From: Salpingoeca rosetta
Taxonomy: Eukaryota > Protista > Choanoflagellata
DNA length: 28,410 nucleotides
Assembly: GCA_033442325.1 (NCBI GenBank)
Contig: JAWQFM010000031.1
Location: forward strand, 1 to 28,410
Direction: 5' to 3'
Shown: one piece after another, positions 2,437-12,444 of the stretch
Layout: every line of letters starts with the position of its first letter
Position numbering within the stretch: the first letter of the stretch is position 1
The notes under the pieces: generated by a model
Seen by the model: only the letters and a program-made list of their open reading frames with translations
What the model was told of the DNA's origin: nothing
Database searches by the model: none
Program-made: the position numbers and the translations under genes

Positions 2437-2496
2437 GCACCCCCGAACAAAAGTGCACCCCAGAACGCAGCCAGAGAGGAAGGAGCTGACTTGAAG
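2437..2496 (+). repeat. Left terminal inverted repeat (core) of the MULE
   Basis: gcacccccgaacaaaagtgcaccccagaacgcagccagagaggaaggagctgacttgaag is the reverse complement of 12385-12444 with a single mismatch. Confidence 0.9.
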
Positions 2497-3106
2497 CTTT
2501 GACTTGAAGCCACTTGAAGGTCATCCCGCTAAATGCGGAGACGTGTGCTTCCCTGGCCGTACAGAGTCCCGTGCTTGTACTTGTGGCAGTTATTCTTTGC
2601 CCCTGATGCTCCTGCCTTCTTGTGAGACGTTATTGGAACAACAAAGTAACACTGGCAGACCGCAGGTACACATAAGGTTGGGTATGCAATTGCACGCAAA
2701 ACAACAAGCTGTTTGATCTTTTTTTGACAGTGTGTTATTGTTTCCGTATTCTGTGTTATGTTCTGTGGTGTGTTATTTGTTATCGTGTGTATTCGAATTG
2801 ACAAGAACTGCGAGTGCTAGTCCTTGCAGCTTTACAGAGCAGAAGAAGGGTTCAGAGTGCCGTCCACTTGTGCCTTGATAAGTTTGCGTTACTGCAACAA
2901 AACCACACACACACACACACACACAAAAAAAAAAACAGCTGTGCGGTTGCTCGACTGTGTTGGCGACCTTGGAGACATGTGGTCAGTGCTGCGTCTATGC
3001 TGTCGAGAAGAAGAGCGTTCGAGTGACGCACTCAAGCATTCGACACTTCATATGAAACACAGCTTGAACAAGTCAACCAACATGCATCAAAGTGGATGGT
3101 TAATAA

Positions 3107-3146
3107 TTTAAACACACTCAGCATCGTTTAAACACACTCAGCATCG
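3107..3146. repeat. Perfect 20-bp tandem duplication in the MULE 3' non-coding region
   Basis: tttaaacacactcagcatcg occurs twice in tandem. Confidence 0.85.
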
Positions 3147-3400
3147 CATCGCACATTACATACGTTTGCACTCTTATGAAGGCTCAAAGTGAAACCGTGT
3201 ATGATGAAAAGAACACGAATGTGACGTGGGAACAACACAGACACTCAAATGCAAAACACAGAAACTAAAATGCACTCGCTCTGTCCCCTACCCACCCACA
3301 GGTGCACACACAACGAACATACACACACGCGCACGCGCACGCAGCGCACAGATGCACACATGAGGGTGGGGGACTTGTTGCAGCAACAACCTGCTGTTGG

Positions 3401-8651: not shown

Positions 8652-11600
8652 AATGCGGAGTAGCCAAAACATCTGAAAGGTCATCGTCGTCGTCGTCATC
8701 GCTGCTGTTGCTGCTAGTGGTGGTGGTGTTGTTGTTGTTGTTGTTGTTGTTGTTGTTGTTGTAGTCGTCGTTGTTGTTGTTGTTGTAGTCGTCGTCGTCG
8801 TCGTTGTTGCAGTCGTCGTCATCGTCATCGCTGCTGCTGCTGCTGCTGCTGCTGTTGTTGTTGTTGTTGTTGTTGTTGTTGTTGTTGTTGTTGTTGTTGT
8901 TGTTGTTGTTGTTGTTGTTGTTGTTGTTGTTGTTGTTGTTGTTGTTGTTGTTGTTGTGGTGGGGGAGGTGGTCGTCATCGTCATCGTCATCGCCGCTGCT
9001 GCCGCTGCTGCTATTGTTGCTGTTGTTGTTGCCAGTCCCACCATTGAGAGGATACACCTCCTGTAAAAGTACAACAGGTGTGCTCACCACAGGTGTGTGC
9101 TGTTGACGTTGCACGGTTACAAGCTGTGAGTGTGTTTGCGGTGCAGAGGGTTCCAATGGTTGCTGCCGTGCCCCGCGCATAATCCGTTGCGACTTGCTGT
9201 AGAGCCGCTTCGGTTCCACGTTGAGATGGTAGAATTCCACGCGATAGCCGGCGATGTGTGTTGATGGTGGAAGGGCTGGTGCAGCTGCTGGTGTCGCATC
9301 ATCTTGCGTAGGAGGAGGCGGCTGCACTGCTGACGCAACTGTGGACACGGCTGGTGCAGCTGCTGGTGTGGCATCATCTTGCGTAGGAGGAGGCGGCTGC
9401 ACTGCTGACGCAACTGTGGACACGGCTGGTGCAGCTGCTGGTGTGGCATCATCTTGCGTAGGAGGAGGCGGCTGCACTGCTGACGTAGCTCTTGCGGCTC
9501 TCCCATCGCCTGGCACTAACCTGTTCTCGCGCCGTCGCCCTGGCGGACCAACCAGTTCGCCCCAGTGCTCCTCGTTGAGCGGCAGGTCGTCACCAGGGAT
9601 GAATACCTGCATCGAGTCCCATCCGTTCCTGCGCACCTCTGCTGAAAATATGGCCGCAACTCTGAGTGGACCTGACGTGACAGTTGCTACTGCAACCATG
9701 TGAGCACACGGAAGCCCTCTGTGTGTGTGCGACCACACACAGCTGCACGATTCGTCGGTCACGCGTGCCACCTGCATGTCCGTGCCAGTCCAAACAACAA
9801 CAAGAATGAGCTCTGCACTCGCAGGACTATTATACCGCTTGAATGATCAGGCAAACGCCAAGCAAGGTGACATCAAGCAAGCACCCATGACACCCACTGC
9901 TAGGTGGGACCAACCGGCGTGGAGCTGCCTCCTGCGAAGACACTGAATGAATGCCTCCCCACAGATAGGGCTTCCATCGTCACAGCCAAATCAATTGACT
10001 GTAAGATCTTCTGCTCTGCGAAGTCTGTCAACCCTGTGAAGGTGGGGGAGGCACTGGTGTCAGTGTTCATCAACACATCCAATCACACACGTATGCTCAG
10101 CTACGTAAGCCTCCCGAGTAGCACGATCGCTTCGCCCACCTTCGTTGCTTGGCCCAACAGTTCCGCGTCGTTTGGCGACCCACTTCAGCACATGTCGAAG
10201 AATGGTCAGTGGACCTTCCTTTTTGTACTGCTTCCAAGCAGCATTAATGCTTTCAGCTGTTTGCGTGGTGCTGCTGCCATAGCTAGCAACACAAAGATTT
10301 CACATGAGCTCAACATCGTGTGCTAATTGCGGTGGCTCACACACACACACACAAGCACAAACCGAACAACGCACATGCACACACACGCACAAACCGAACA
10401 ACGCACATGCACACACACGCACAACCGCACACAGGCGCGCACACAGGTACACGCACAAACATACACACACACAGTATAAGCAAACAAACGCAATGTACAC
10501 ACACTGACGTACACACGCACAGGTACACAGACACAGACGCACGCACACACTGCGGTAGGCATACACGCTGACGTACGCATACGCAGAGACACACGCAGAC
10601 ACAGACAGGACACACACACACACACACACACACACAGACATGCCTTTCCCTTACCTCGGAAGAGACATGAAGAGGCTACACCACTGGTGTGCCTTTGCCC
10701 ACAAGGAGTCGTGTGCAGATGGATGGTACTCCTGCATCCTGTCCATAACGGCGCTGAAGGTACGCAGCGAGCGTGAACGCCTGGCCTGTTCAAAGAGCGG
10801 CCGGACATTCTTGCCCATGTTTTGCTTCAAGTGAAAGCAGCACAGGGCATGTTCCCACGACCGTGGAATGATCGGGGAGCGTAGCGCTGCACCCACTCCT
10901 GTCCCCTGATCCGTGAAGATGAGATGCGGACCCTGCGACGAACGGGTGCGGAGAAACACACAGGCAGAGCACATTTTGGATGAGTACAAGTCATACACAG
11001 AGTGGCATATCACAAGTCGCAATCGTCCGAGCAAACCATGTCATCACTTGCATTGAGGTGAGGCATGCATTCAAGGGCCATCGCAAACAGGGCCTCGTAT
11101 GCTGCCGCCGTCTCTGACTCAAATATCGCAATGCCTATGACAAAGGCGTTGCGATTTGTGTCGAGCTGTGACAGCACAAGCAACTTGTCCTTGGATGGCC
11201 CCGTGAGAAACGTCGCATCCGCGAGGAGCACAGAGGGGCTGTTTGCAGACAGAACAGTCGGTTTCAGACACACGACGAGGTGTTTGAATTTGCCATCATC
11301 ATCAAACTCGGCCTGTGCCACATGGATCCCAGAAGCGTTGATGTACTCTGTCGACAGTGGTATGTTTGTCCCACAACAATACACACTCATGTACAGACAT
11401 GTACACACGGACAGACATGTGCACAGACAGATACAGACACACGCACACGAACAAACACACGAGCAAACACACGAACAGACACACACGACCACACACATGC
11501 GTTGAAGTGAGCCGACAAGCACCAAATGCGCACATCACCACCCCCGTTGTACCCAAAAGAACTAAATCCTGCACGAGCCACCGCAATATGTGTTTGTGTC

Positions 11601-12381
11601 TCACCGACTGCACTCTGCAGTTGCATGTAATCTTGGGCAAGTGAAGGGGAATCCATCCTATTCACGTGGCTAGCGTACAGCTGCATCTGGCGTACAGTGA
11701 CGGTGATGCCGTATCTTATCTTGACAGCCGCAACCTTTGCCTTCGCCGTGCCCATGATGCTGGCGTCGTATGCTGCAAGCACCTTCGGCTTGACGGTCTT
11801 CTCGGTTACGGCACATGTGTGCTTTTGAACCTGTGTCACTCGATATAGGCAAGGGGTGGCGTCGGATTCGATCACCGTGTACACTCTGTATTCGCATCCA
11901 CGCTTGCAACACACGACTTGAAACCGCCTGTGATCTTTCTTCTGCACCTGATGACGCGTAACACACGAACAAGGCAAGGGAGAAGTCACTTCGAACGTGA
12001 GCTCGGTCACCGTTGTGCCAAGAATGCGCGCGGCAAGCACGTGCAAACATGCACATAGGCACATACACAGGCGTGAATACAGAGATGAGTAGGAACATCG
12101 CGTCTAGTTTGAAGGTTAAGTCACAACACTACCTGATGGTGTTGGCCCTTGTGGACTGCGATCCGGGCCAGCTGGAAGTTCAAGCGCTCAAATGTGAGCG
12201 TCTTGCCCACCTTGAGGGCGGCATATGCGGCGTCGAGGCCGGTCTCTTGAATACAGGAGACTCTTTCCCCAGCAGACAGCATCCCGCATGGTTCGACAAA
12301 TTCAATGATGGCAGTTAACGTAACGGCGAGGGATGATGCACAAGGGCTGTGGGTTGACGTCACACTGTGCTTGACACTCAT
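8652..12381 (-). CDS. Mutator/MuDR-family transposase (MuDR Zn-finger + MULE DDE + SWIM), 7 exons
   Basis: Exons 12381-12133, 11947-11605, 11347-11037, 10932-10655, 10282-10140, 10033-9915 and 9771-8652 are in phase. Motifs: VQKKDHRRFQVVCCKRGCEYRV...KHTC (MuDR DNA-binding finger), LLADATF (D1), IFESET, IFTDQG (D2), CCFH (CxxH), STTQTAESIN (E), CSC...GLPCAH (SWIM). The start ATG at 12381 is tentative. If unspliced at 8652 the frame ends at TGA 8623-8625. Confidence 0.92.
8683..9030 (-). repeat. Coding trinucleotide repeats (AAC/GAC/AGC) giving poly-Asn, poly-Asp and poly-Ser
   Basis: Long (GTT)n, (GTC)n and (GCT)n runs on the + strand, in frame with ORF 8623..9777. Confidence 0.9.
9274..9485 (-). 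repeat. 75-bp coding tandem repeat, ~2.8 copies (SAVQPPPPTQDDATPAAAPAVSTVA)
   Basis: Near-identical units start at 9274, 9349 and 9424. Confidence 0.92.
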
Positions 12382-12384
12382 AGC

Positions 12385-12444
12385 CTTCAAGTCAGCTCCT
12401 TCCTCTCTGGCTGCGTTCTGGGGAGCACTTTTGTTCGGGGGTGC
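12385..12444 (-). repeat. Right terminal inverted repeat (core) of the MULE
   Basis: cttcaagtcagctccttcctctctggctgcgttctggggagcacttttgttcgggggtgc matches 2437-2496 inverted at 59/60. It also shows up as the shared peptide APPNKSAPQNAAREEGADLK in opposite-strand ORFs. Confidence 0.9.

Follow-up and report, generated by a model that had tools for sequence, protein, structure and literature searches.

A second Mutator-like transposon family in Salpingoeca rosetta with a USP-class deubiquitinase as probable cargo

A locus close to the start of contig JAWQFM010000031.1 of the choanoflagellate Salpingoeca rosetta (assembly GCA_033442325.1) raises the question of whether a Mutator-type DNA transposon can carry a deubiquitinase of its own and, if it does, whether the enzyme is made in one polypeptide with the transposase. 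The window, i.e. the whole stretch of DNA that was analysed, is the first 28.4 kb of this contig (28,410 nucleotides). A first-pass annotation, made from the letters alone, had read positions 2437-12444 as a Mutator transposon encoding a transposase and a ubiquitin-specific protease (USP) of peptidase family C19, probably as one fusion of about 1500 residues; we find that the two do lie on the same strand within the same terminal inverted repeats (TIRs), but that the single fusion is only somewhat more likely than not. The explanation that we consider best, namely a second family of Mutator-like elements (MULEs) in this organism, with a captured USP that is likely to be fused to the transposase, is one that, taken as a whole, we hold with modest confidence.

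Ends, transposase and family of the element

The limits of the element are set by two TIR arms (2437-2496 and 12385-12444) that are reverse complements of one another with a single mismatch, i.e. identical at 59 of 60 positions, just as had been stated in the first-pass annotation; the 10-kb interval has no N, and all of its coding is on the minus strand. Outside the 60-bp core the similarity is weaker, with nine matches over the next 12 bp outward (68 of 72 when 2425-2436 is included). Across the 55.4-Mb assembly the TIR occurs at three sites only, these being the two ends of the element and one place on contig C1, and a chance match can thus be discounted. The homology on C1 extends 39 bp past the 60-bp TIR, beginning GGGATAA, and the true right terminus is probably 12483, with this same start. 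The left end is a distinct 3′-type end, unlike both the 5′ end of the element and the C1 copy, and is the only 3′-type end of the family in the genome; as the USP lies between the transposase and that end, it lies inside the element. We infer that the USP is cargo of the MULE, and not a bystander, with high probability. The modules are arranged as follows.

2437-2496, no strand assigned: left (3′) TIR, 59/60 to the right core, adjoined by three GACTTGAAG-like subterminal repeats
2497-3400, minus: 3′ noncoding stretch from the USP stop codon to the left TIR, presumably 3′ untranslated region (UTR) and subterminal region
3401-6472, minus: USP (C19) catalytic module, nine exons, stop codon at 3401-3403
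6696-8383, minus: linker, five exons
8384-8651, minus: putative joining intron, with donor GTGAGT at 8651 and acceptor CAG at 8384
8652-12381, minus: transposase module, seven exons (A-G), motifs intact
12385-12444, no strand assigned: right (5′) TIR, 60-bp core, with weak similarity to the left end as far as 12456 and C1 homology as far as 12483

The transposase was rebuilt from seven exons, and its motifs were compared with those of SrosM, the MULE family already published for this species, and of metagenomic relatives.

12381-12133, minus: exon A
11947-11605, minus: exon B
11347-11037, minus: exon C
10932-10655, minus: exon D
10273-10140, minus: exon E
10033-9963, minus: exon F
9837-8652, minus: exon G
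11882-11911, minus: DBD_Tnp_Mut-like zinc finger, CCKRGC.. (16.5 bits, under the cut-off of 25), which aligns with SrosM proteins
10243-11228, minus: catalytic core with intact motifs, comprising D1 LLADATF (11208-11228), D2 QLDTNRN (11148-11168), CxxH as CCFH (10831-10842) and E as AESIN (10243-10257)
9700-9747, minus: SWIM-type CxC..CxH zinc finger (17.3 bits, under the cut-off of 19.6), which by eye resembles that of the metagenomic relative P0002
9520-9546, minus: PPGRR motif, usually found near the C-terminus of MULE transposases
8652-9485, minus: low-complexity tail of exon G, about 280 codons, with the transposase frame open

Pfam, run on the stop-free pieces of the minus strand, matched MULE (PF10551) in exon C at 28.9 bits (cut-off 27.6) and in exon D at 18.1 bits, and the genome scan gave 32.3 bits. 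Both D residues and the CxxH motif align with those of relatives, and the E was matched by eye to P0002; in addition, the N-terminus encoded by exon A (by eye against P0006) and the zinc finger of exon B (aligned) resemble SrosM. The start codon at 12381 is on the inner side of the right TIR, only 3 nt from it, and since it abuts the repeat, the promoter is presumably within the TIR. If left unspliced at 8652, the transposase open reading frame (ORF) runs to a stop at 8626. Exon G is open for about 300 codons past the usual transposase end, and its tail contains a tandem repeat at 9267-9485 (75 nt × 2.9, 97% matches), which is in frame and encodes three 25-residue repeats, and a trinucleotide array of 231 nt at 8727-8957, which encodes poly-Asn/Asp/Ser; these repeats all preserve the frame (3-nt and 75-nt units), in contrast with the dinucleotide-type repeats of the introns. 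Most introns of the element (e.g. 4758-5008, 6507-6677, 7366-7601 and 10334-10644) are filled with imperfect TG/CA-type microsatellites, which cross-match hundreds of genomic sites at 70-85% and mimic ORFs as CVCV or HTHT runs. Taken together, the motifs support the assignment of the element to the Mutator superfamily, with a transposase that looks autonomous.

Closest to the MULE core are the S. rosetta proteins PTSG_04488, PTSG_12977 and PTSG_13078, all of SrosM, with 43% identity in the core, and they match copies elsewhere in the genome at 97-100% per exon. According to the published survey of S. rosetta transposable elements (Southworth et al. 2019, PMC6875170), SrosM is the only MULE family of the species and has a length of 8326 bp, 28-bp TIRs, a 9-bp target-site duplication (TSD) and about 23 copies, its reported gene content being one transposase gene. 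The element described here shares with SrosM its host, its superfamily, an alignable N-terminus and zinc-finger region and the presence of introns in the transposase gene; it differs in its length of about 10 kb, in its TIRs of at least 60 bp, in being present as one full copy and in carrying a USP, as no match to the Pfam family UCH was found at the SrosM loci in the genome scan. The core identity of 43%, the longer TIRs and the size of about 10 kb place it outside the surveyed family, and it is the sole full-length copy of a second MULE family in S. rosetta, which is absent from the published list. A family profile search over residues 409-1302 returned the seed alone. Two SrosM copies (C11:863531-866048 and C30:657860-660379) share 2.5 kb only, at 98.5%, and are bounded by N gaps, i.e. 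they are incompletely assembled there.

When the genome was searched at the DNA level with the two halves of the element, transposase and USP, this locus alone was returned, apart from intron microsatellites and a fragment on C1 (C1:1795167-1795967). This fragment matches the window from 12483 to 11653 with about 93% identity at aligned bases, has a different outer flank and takes in the terminus and the TIR together with exon A, intron 1 and some of exon B. The fragment is a pseudogene, in which exon A is interrupted by a premature stop and has lost 19 bp to a deletion. Between the element and the fragment, the ratio of non-synonymous to synonymous divergence (dN/dS) is 0.24, with a dS of 0.19 (exons A-B, 174 codons). 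These data show that the transposase has been under purifying selection and that much of the divergence between the copies accrued under it, and they suggest that the family evolved as a selected, active lineage; the pattern is the one that diverging active transposon lineages would show. An ORF of about 4.9 kb that is intact in so old a family likewise implies selection, and would be compatible with recent activity or with the adoption of a host function. At present the element appears not to be proliferating, and its mobility today is doubtful because it is single-copy, has no TSD and has a left terminus that is possibly truncated. Divergence between the fragment and the element is about 3-8% in the intron and TIR, which is below the synonymous value of about 17-19%, and the TIR and the first intron may hold conserved regulatory sequence.

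The USP module and its host paralogue

The USP exons of the rebuilt model and their motifs are as follows.

6472-6273, minus: exon L
6200-5960, minus: exon M, for which a donor right after the HDSH codons (about 6004) suits the homology better than 5960
5863-5804, minus: exon N
5665-5558, minus: exon O
5212-5046, minus: exon P
4694-4562, minus: exon Q
4256-4212, minus: exon R1
4071-3950, minus: exon R2
3632-3401, minus: exon S
6362-6382, minus: Cys box, intact
5171-5191 and 4676-4693, minus: CxxC pairs, intact
3970-3987, minus: His box, intact
3605-3622, minus: Asp box, intact, followed by an acidic tail

In the order of the protein, the motifs read GNTCYMN (the Cys box), a QQD-like HDSH followed by DFLLALL, then LIVHLMRF, NGHYTA and FSDEHV. 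Matches to UCH (PF00443) fall on four separate exons, with 36.9 bits for the Cys box (profile positions 1-30) and 28.2 bits for the His box, and the USP exons between them span profile positions 1-92, 124-173, 194-222 and 224-254, the last of these on the C-terminal exon. GNTCYMN aligns to the Cys boxes of yeast Ubp8 and of USP2 and USP8, the His box aligns to that of USP15, and the closest solved structures to the module are human USP21, USP8 and USP2. The module encodes a complete C19 domain of the USP2/8/21 type, with its catalytic motifs intact. What the first-pass annotation had said of the motifs, i.e. same-strand coding, intact D-D-E, CxxH and SWIM motifs in the transposase and intact Cys and His boxes in the USP, is borne out, and the Asp box and CxxC pairs can be added to it; the Pfam run that it had proposed placed MULE and UCH above their cut-offs, but left SWIM and DBD_Tnp_Mut below theirs, with the motifs nevertheless visible.

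The only close paralogue of the USP exons in the genome is at C11:589909-592649, with 44-59% amino-acid identity; exon P matches it from end to end (57 residues), and the matches of exons Q and R2 are partial. The gene that contains this paralogue (C11:587257-592649) has, upstream of its Cys box, a 930-codon open frame and, by eye, a rhodanese-domain end, on the strength of which we read it as USP8-like; the same frame also encodes a coiled region rich in Glu and Arg and extended tracts of low complexity ahead of the Cys box. The element copy has in common with this gene and with human USP21, USP8 and USP2 the conserved Cys, His and Asp boxes and zinc ribbon. It differs from the host gene in that the N-terminal region containing the rhodanese domain is missing, its place being taken by about 330 residues that have no detectable homology.

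Similarity between the element and the C11 gene begins about 25 codons before the Cys box, within the 930-codon open frame of the host gene, which means that the catalytic part alone was copied, at the DNA level, and a USP copied in this way needs upstream exons for its expression. The module thus reads as an ancient capture, introns included, from the 3′ portion of a USP8-like gene of the host: with the closest host paralogue only 44-59% identical the capture is old, and the recent insertion proposed at first is not upheld. The GC content at third codon positions (GC3) is 0.61 in the transposase, 0.64 in the linker and 0.63-0.66 in the USP, against 0.82 in the host paralogue on C11 (0.66 versus 0.82 for the two USP copies), and for SrosM a value of 0.62 has been published (PMC6875170); the GC3 of the USP exons is transposon-like. 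The USP copy is also within 500 bp of the transposase, downstream of it and on the same strand.

One polypeptide or two genes

The question of whether the transposase and the USP form one protein turns on the five linker exons that lie between them, for which the boundaries of I, J and K are uncertain.

8383-8283, minus: exon x
8156-7823, minus: exon H
7713-7652, minus: exon I
7305-7109, minus: exon J
6999-6696, minus: exon K

These exons (about 330 residues) matched no Pfam family and no genomic paralogue, bore no resemblance to the upstream region of the USP8-like gene on C11 and were poorly recognized in the ESM Atlas. Exons H, J and K are long open frames, and as H has 113 codons without a Met, translation must start upstream of it, either in the transposase or at the ATG of exon x (8321). 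The GTGAGT donor at 8651 is eight codons before the transposase stop at 8626, and the first good acceptor past the 8652 donor, at 8384, keeps the frame through exon x into H. With junctions guided by anchors, one in each coding piece, we rebuilt a chain of 21 exons with GT-AG junctions, matching phases and no stop, as first described, but with a length of 4878 nt (1625 residues) and not 4527 nt (about 1508 residues); alternative junctions exist at F-G, I-J, J-K, M-N and O-P. A gene model built by dynamic programming on codon usage and GT-AG sites was discarded, as it took the TG-microsatellites as coding and, after these had been masked, dropped true USP exons.

Indirect evidence from RNA was obtained as the shares of sampled 31-mers held by sequencing runs, which were sorted into RNA-like and DNA-like types by program guesses. 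Over 3400-12400, the RNA-like runs, from three studies, hold 0.46-0.49 of the sampled 31-mers and the DNA-like runs 0.79-0.96, and the 21-exon model predicts a share of 0.476, with about 0.26 predicted from the transposase exons alone and about 0.17 from the USP side alone. Over 8284-8751, RNA-like runs hold 0.23-0.25 (10-11 of the 44 words) and DNA-like runs 0.93-0.98. These shares point to expression and splicing of both halves and to the loss of most of 8384-8651 from mature RNA, and a transposase mRNA left unspliced would then have a 3′ UTR of only a few tens of nucleotides. The k-mer shares across 8652/8383, where the first-pass annotation had proposed that RNA be mapped, accordingly fit splicing at 8652, but connectivity is not established by them. 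It is simpler to suppose that the 8652 donor is used, and we lean, if not strongly, towards a single transposase-USP fusion ORF.

As we would reconstruct it, the TIRs enclose a seven-exon transposase gene, then five exons of unknown origin and then the nine USP exons, and use of the donor at 8652 would yield one protein of about 1600 residues composed of transposase, disordered linker and USP. The protease might then act in cis with the transposase, which is a guess, and might spare the transposase from ubiquitin-dependent turnover or strip ubiquitin marks from the chromatin of the element; both roles are speculation.

A number of findings weigh against this reconstruction. The stop-free chain in matching phase, previously taken as evidence of a fusion, was rejected as statistical support for it, since the donors have barely any consensus beyond GT and compatible pairs are expected by chance. 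None of the sequencing runs is on record as RNA; a share of 11 of 44 words does not separate a fusion from a transposase mRNA ending a few tens of nucleotides past 8652; and the in-frame ATG in exon x (8321) could serve as the start of a USP protein of its own. Among the matches to the MULE exon (in a library of 1.84 billion proteins) or to the SWIM exon there was no protein, annotated or predicted, from this locus, which means little, as records from the organism's own genome may be missing, and no USP exons were found in the nearest metagenomic MULEs, P0002 and P0007, on contigs of at most 6.3 kb. The genome search, which had been suggested with several copies holding TIR, MULE and USP together in mind, gave one full copy, the other copy being an 836-bp 5′ fragment without the USP region. 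No TSD was found, in that the two sides have no common 8-11-mer at either candidate boundary with one mismatch allowed; the sole flank repeat is the 7-mer TTTTGTG (2409-2415 and 12469-12475), for which the chance expectation is about 1 in 4. Finally, an outer piece of 27 bp (12457-12483), present both at the right end and in the C1 copy, is missing from the left end, and a search for a third genomic site holding these 27 bp found none; either the terminus is 12483 and the left end may have lost them, or the C1 piece may have been copied along with flanking DNA.

Three other explanations have to be set against the captured and fused USP. The element could contain two genes, with the transposase stopping at 8626 and the USP read as a separate accessory gene from ATG 8321 under its own promoter; we consider this arrangement, to which mudrB in MuDR and the ULP1-like genes in plant MULEs would be parallels, somewhat unlikely. 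It is consistent with the ATG in exon x, with the 240 bp between the transposase stop and that exon, with an in-frame chain that has no statistical weight and with the 11 of 44 words found in 8284-8751, which fall between the predictions of the two models; we also count in its favour that, in known MULEs, an accessory gene is as a rule transcribed as a unit of its own. Against it stand the absence of most of 8384-8651 from the RNA-like runs, which would limit the 3′ UTR of an unspliced transposase mRNA to a few tens of nucleotides, the transposase frame, which is open for about 300 extra codons right to the GTGAGT donor, and the 20 codons of exon x before its ATG, which are open in the very frame that the donor sets.

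A former MULE with USP cargo might, on the other hand, have become immobilized and domesticated as a single-copy host gene for a transposase-derived DNA-binding protein fused to a deubiquitinase, in the manner of SETMAR or FHY3/FAR1, with the TIRs as leftovers. The single copy, the lack of a TSD and the possibly truncated left terminus would all suit such a history, as would the expression and splicing of the locus and the selection implied by an intact ORF of about 4.9 kb in an old family (dS 0.19 to the C1 fragment). We regard it as unlikely, however, because the D-D-E triad is intact and both 60-bp TIRs are near-perfect, which is unusual in old domesticated copies, because the search of the 1.84-billion-protein library with the MULE core gave six matches only (two SrosM clusters and four metagenome/Logan clusters) and because GC3 is transposon-like and not host-like. 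It would be very unlikely, in our view, for the USP to be a resident host gene caught between the 5′-truncated and 3′-truncated remnants of two MULE insertions at a transposon-rich contig end. The missing TSD, the Harbinger element that abuts the left TIR, the position of the window in the first 28 kb of the contig and the host-like USP introns, with exon P matching the host paralogue from end to end, are what such a bystander would explain, but it requires two insertions and two deletions, and the left TIR, as the family's sole 3′-type end in the genome, pairs with the right one at 59 of 60 positions. The USP copy, moreover, lacks the N-terminal part of the paralogue, follows the transposase on the same strand at a distance of less than 500 bp and has the GC3 of the transposase, not that of the paralogue.

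Neighbouring sequence and known systems

The neighbouring host genes had been described as decayed, which is not what the flanks contain: a Harbinger-type transposon is found on the left and a TNFR-like cysteine-rich gene on the right.

250-2371, minus: Harbinger/PIF-type transposase remnants, with DDE_Tnp_4 at 30.4 bits at 250-519
1390-1686: reads like the N-terminal part of a Harbinger catalytic domain
18733-21443, plus: long open frames with cysteine repeats and sub-threshold TNFR_c6 matches (25.3 and 23.1 bits)

The Harbinger remnants abut the left TIR on the same strand and run toward the start of the contig, and they are probably the single-copy SrosHar of the published survey (PMC6875170). 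The TNFR-like gene on the right is apparently an intact host gene and is not decayed.

Cysteine proteases of the ubiquitin-like-modifier systems are found in other Mutator-like elements, as some plant MULEs, e.g. the Kaonashi elements of Arabidopsis, carry ULP1-like (C48) SUMO proteases. The present element is similar in being a MULE with an acquired protease of this kind; it differs in that the protease is a C19 ubiquitin protease and not a C48 SUMO protease, that the host is a unicellular holozoan and not a plant and that there is one copy in place of an expanded family. Pack-MULEs, which are non-autonomous MULEs, carry captured fragments of host genes that are usually short and often decayed. 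They too have host-derived exons and introns between MULE TIRs, with the parent gene taken in part (here, the catalytic domain), whereas the element described here still has its transposase, and the domain that it captured is complete, with catalytic motifs that are intact. Deubiquitinases are also known from Helitrons and Helentrons, in which VTD and OTU domains are located inside the RepHel ORF, and for which a role in keeping the transposition proteins from being degraded by the proteasome has been proposed (Erven et al. 2022, PMC9741609). These are likewise DNA transposons with a deubiquitinase in the same polypeptide as the transposition enzyme (putatively so in our case), but they are rolling-circle elements with VTD or OTU domains, and ours is a cut-and-paste DDE element with a USP. 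In the literature searched, we found no description of a MULE, or of any other DDE transposase, with a USP domain, in line with the first-pass annotation, which knew of none. The concept of transposon-encoded ubiquitin and SUMO proteases is already known; a USP in a MULE is apparently undescribed.

A Mutator element whose USP domain is complete would, if our reading is true, be a third case, independent of the others, in which a mobile element has recruited deubiquitination, here in an organism that is tractable, as transfection and editing are possible and the single copy makes a knock-out or a Cys-to-Ala edit unambiguous. With this element, the published list of S. rosetta transposons gains a second MULE family, and without the fusion an ordinary capture of a host gene by a MULE remains. 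The broader proposal, that a DDE transposon makes a single transposase-USP polypeptide and takes its own protease to the donor or target site, there to evade ubiquitin-dependent turnover or to clear ubiquitin marks from chromatin, and that this would be the first USP-class deubiquitinase in a Mutator transposase, is a tentative one that we would place a little short of even. If this proposal is true, a transposase that carries its own USP to the donor or target site would be present in a close unicellular relative of animals.

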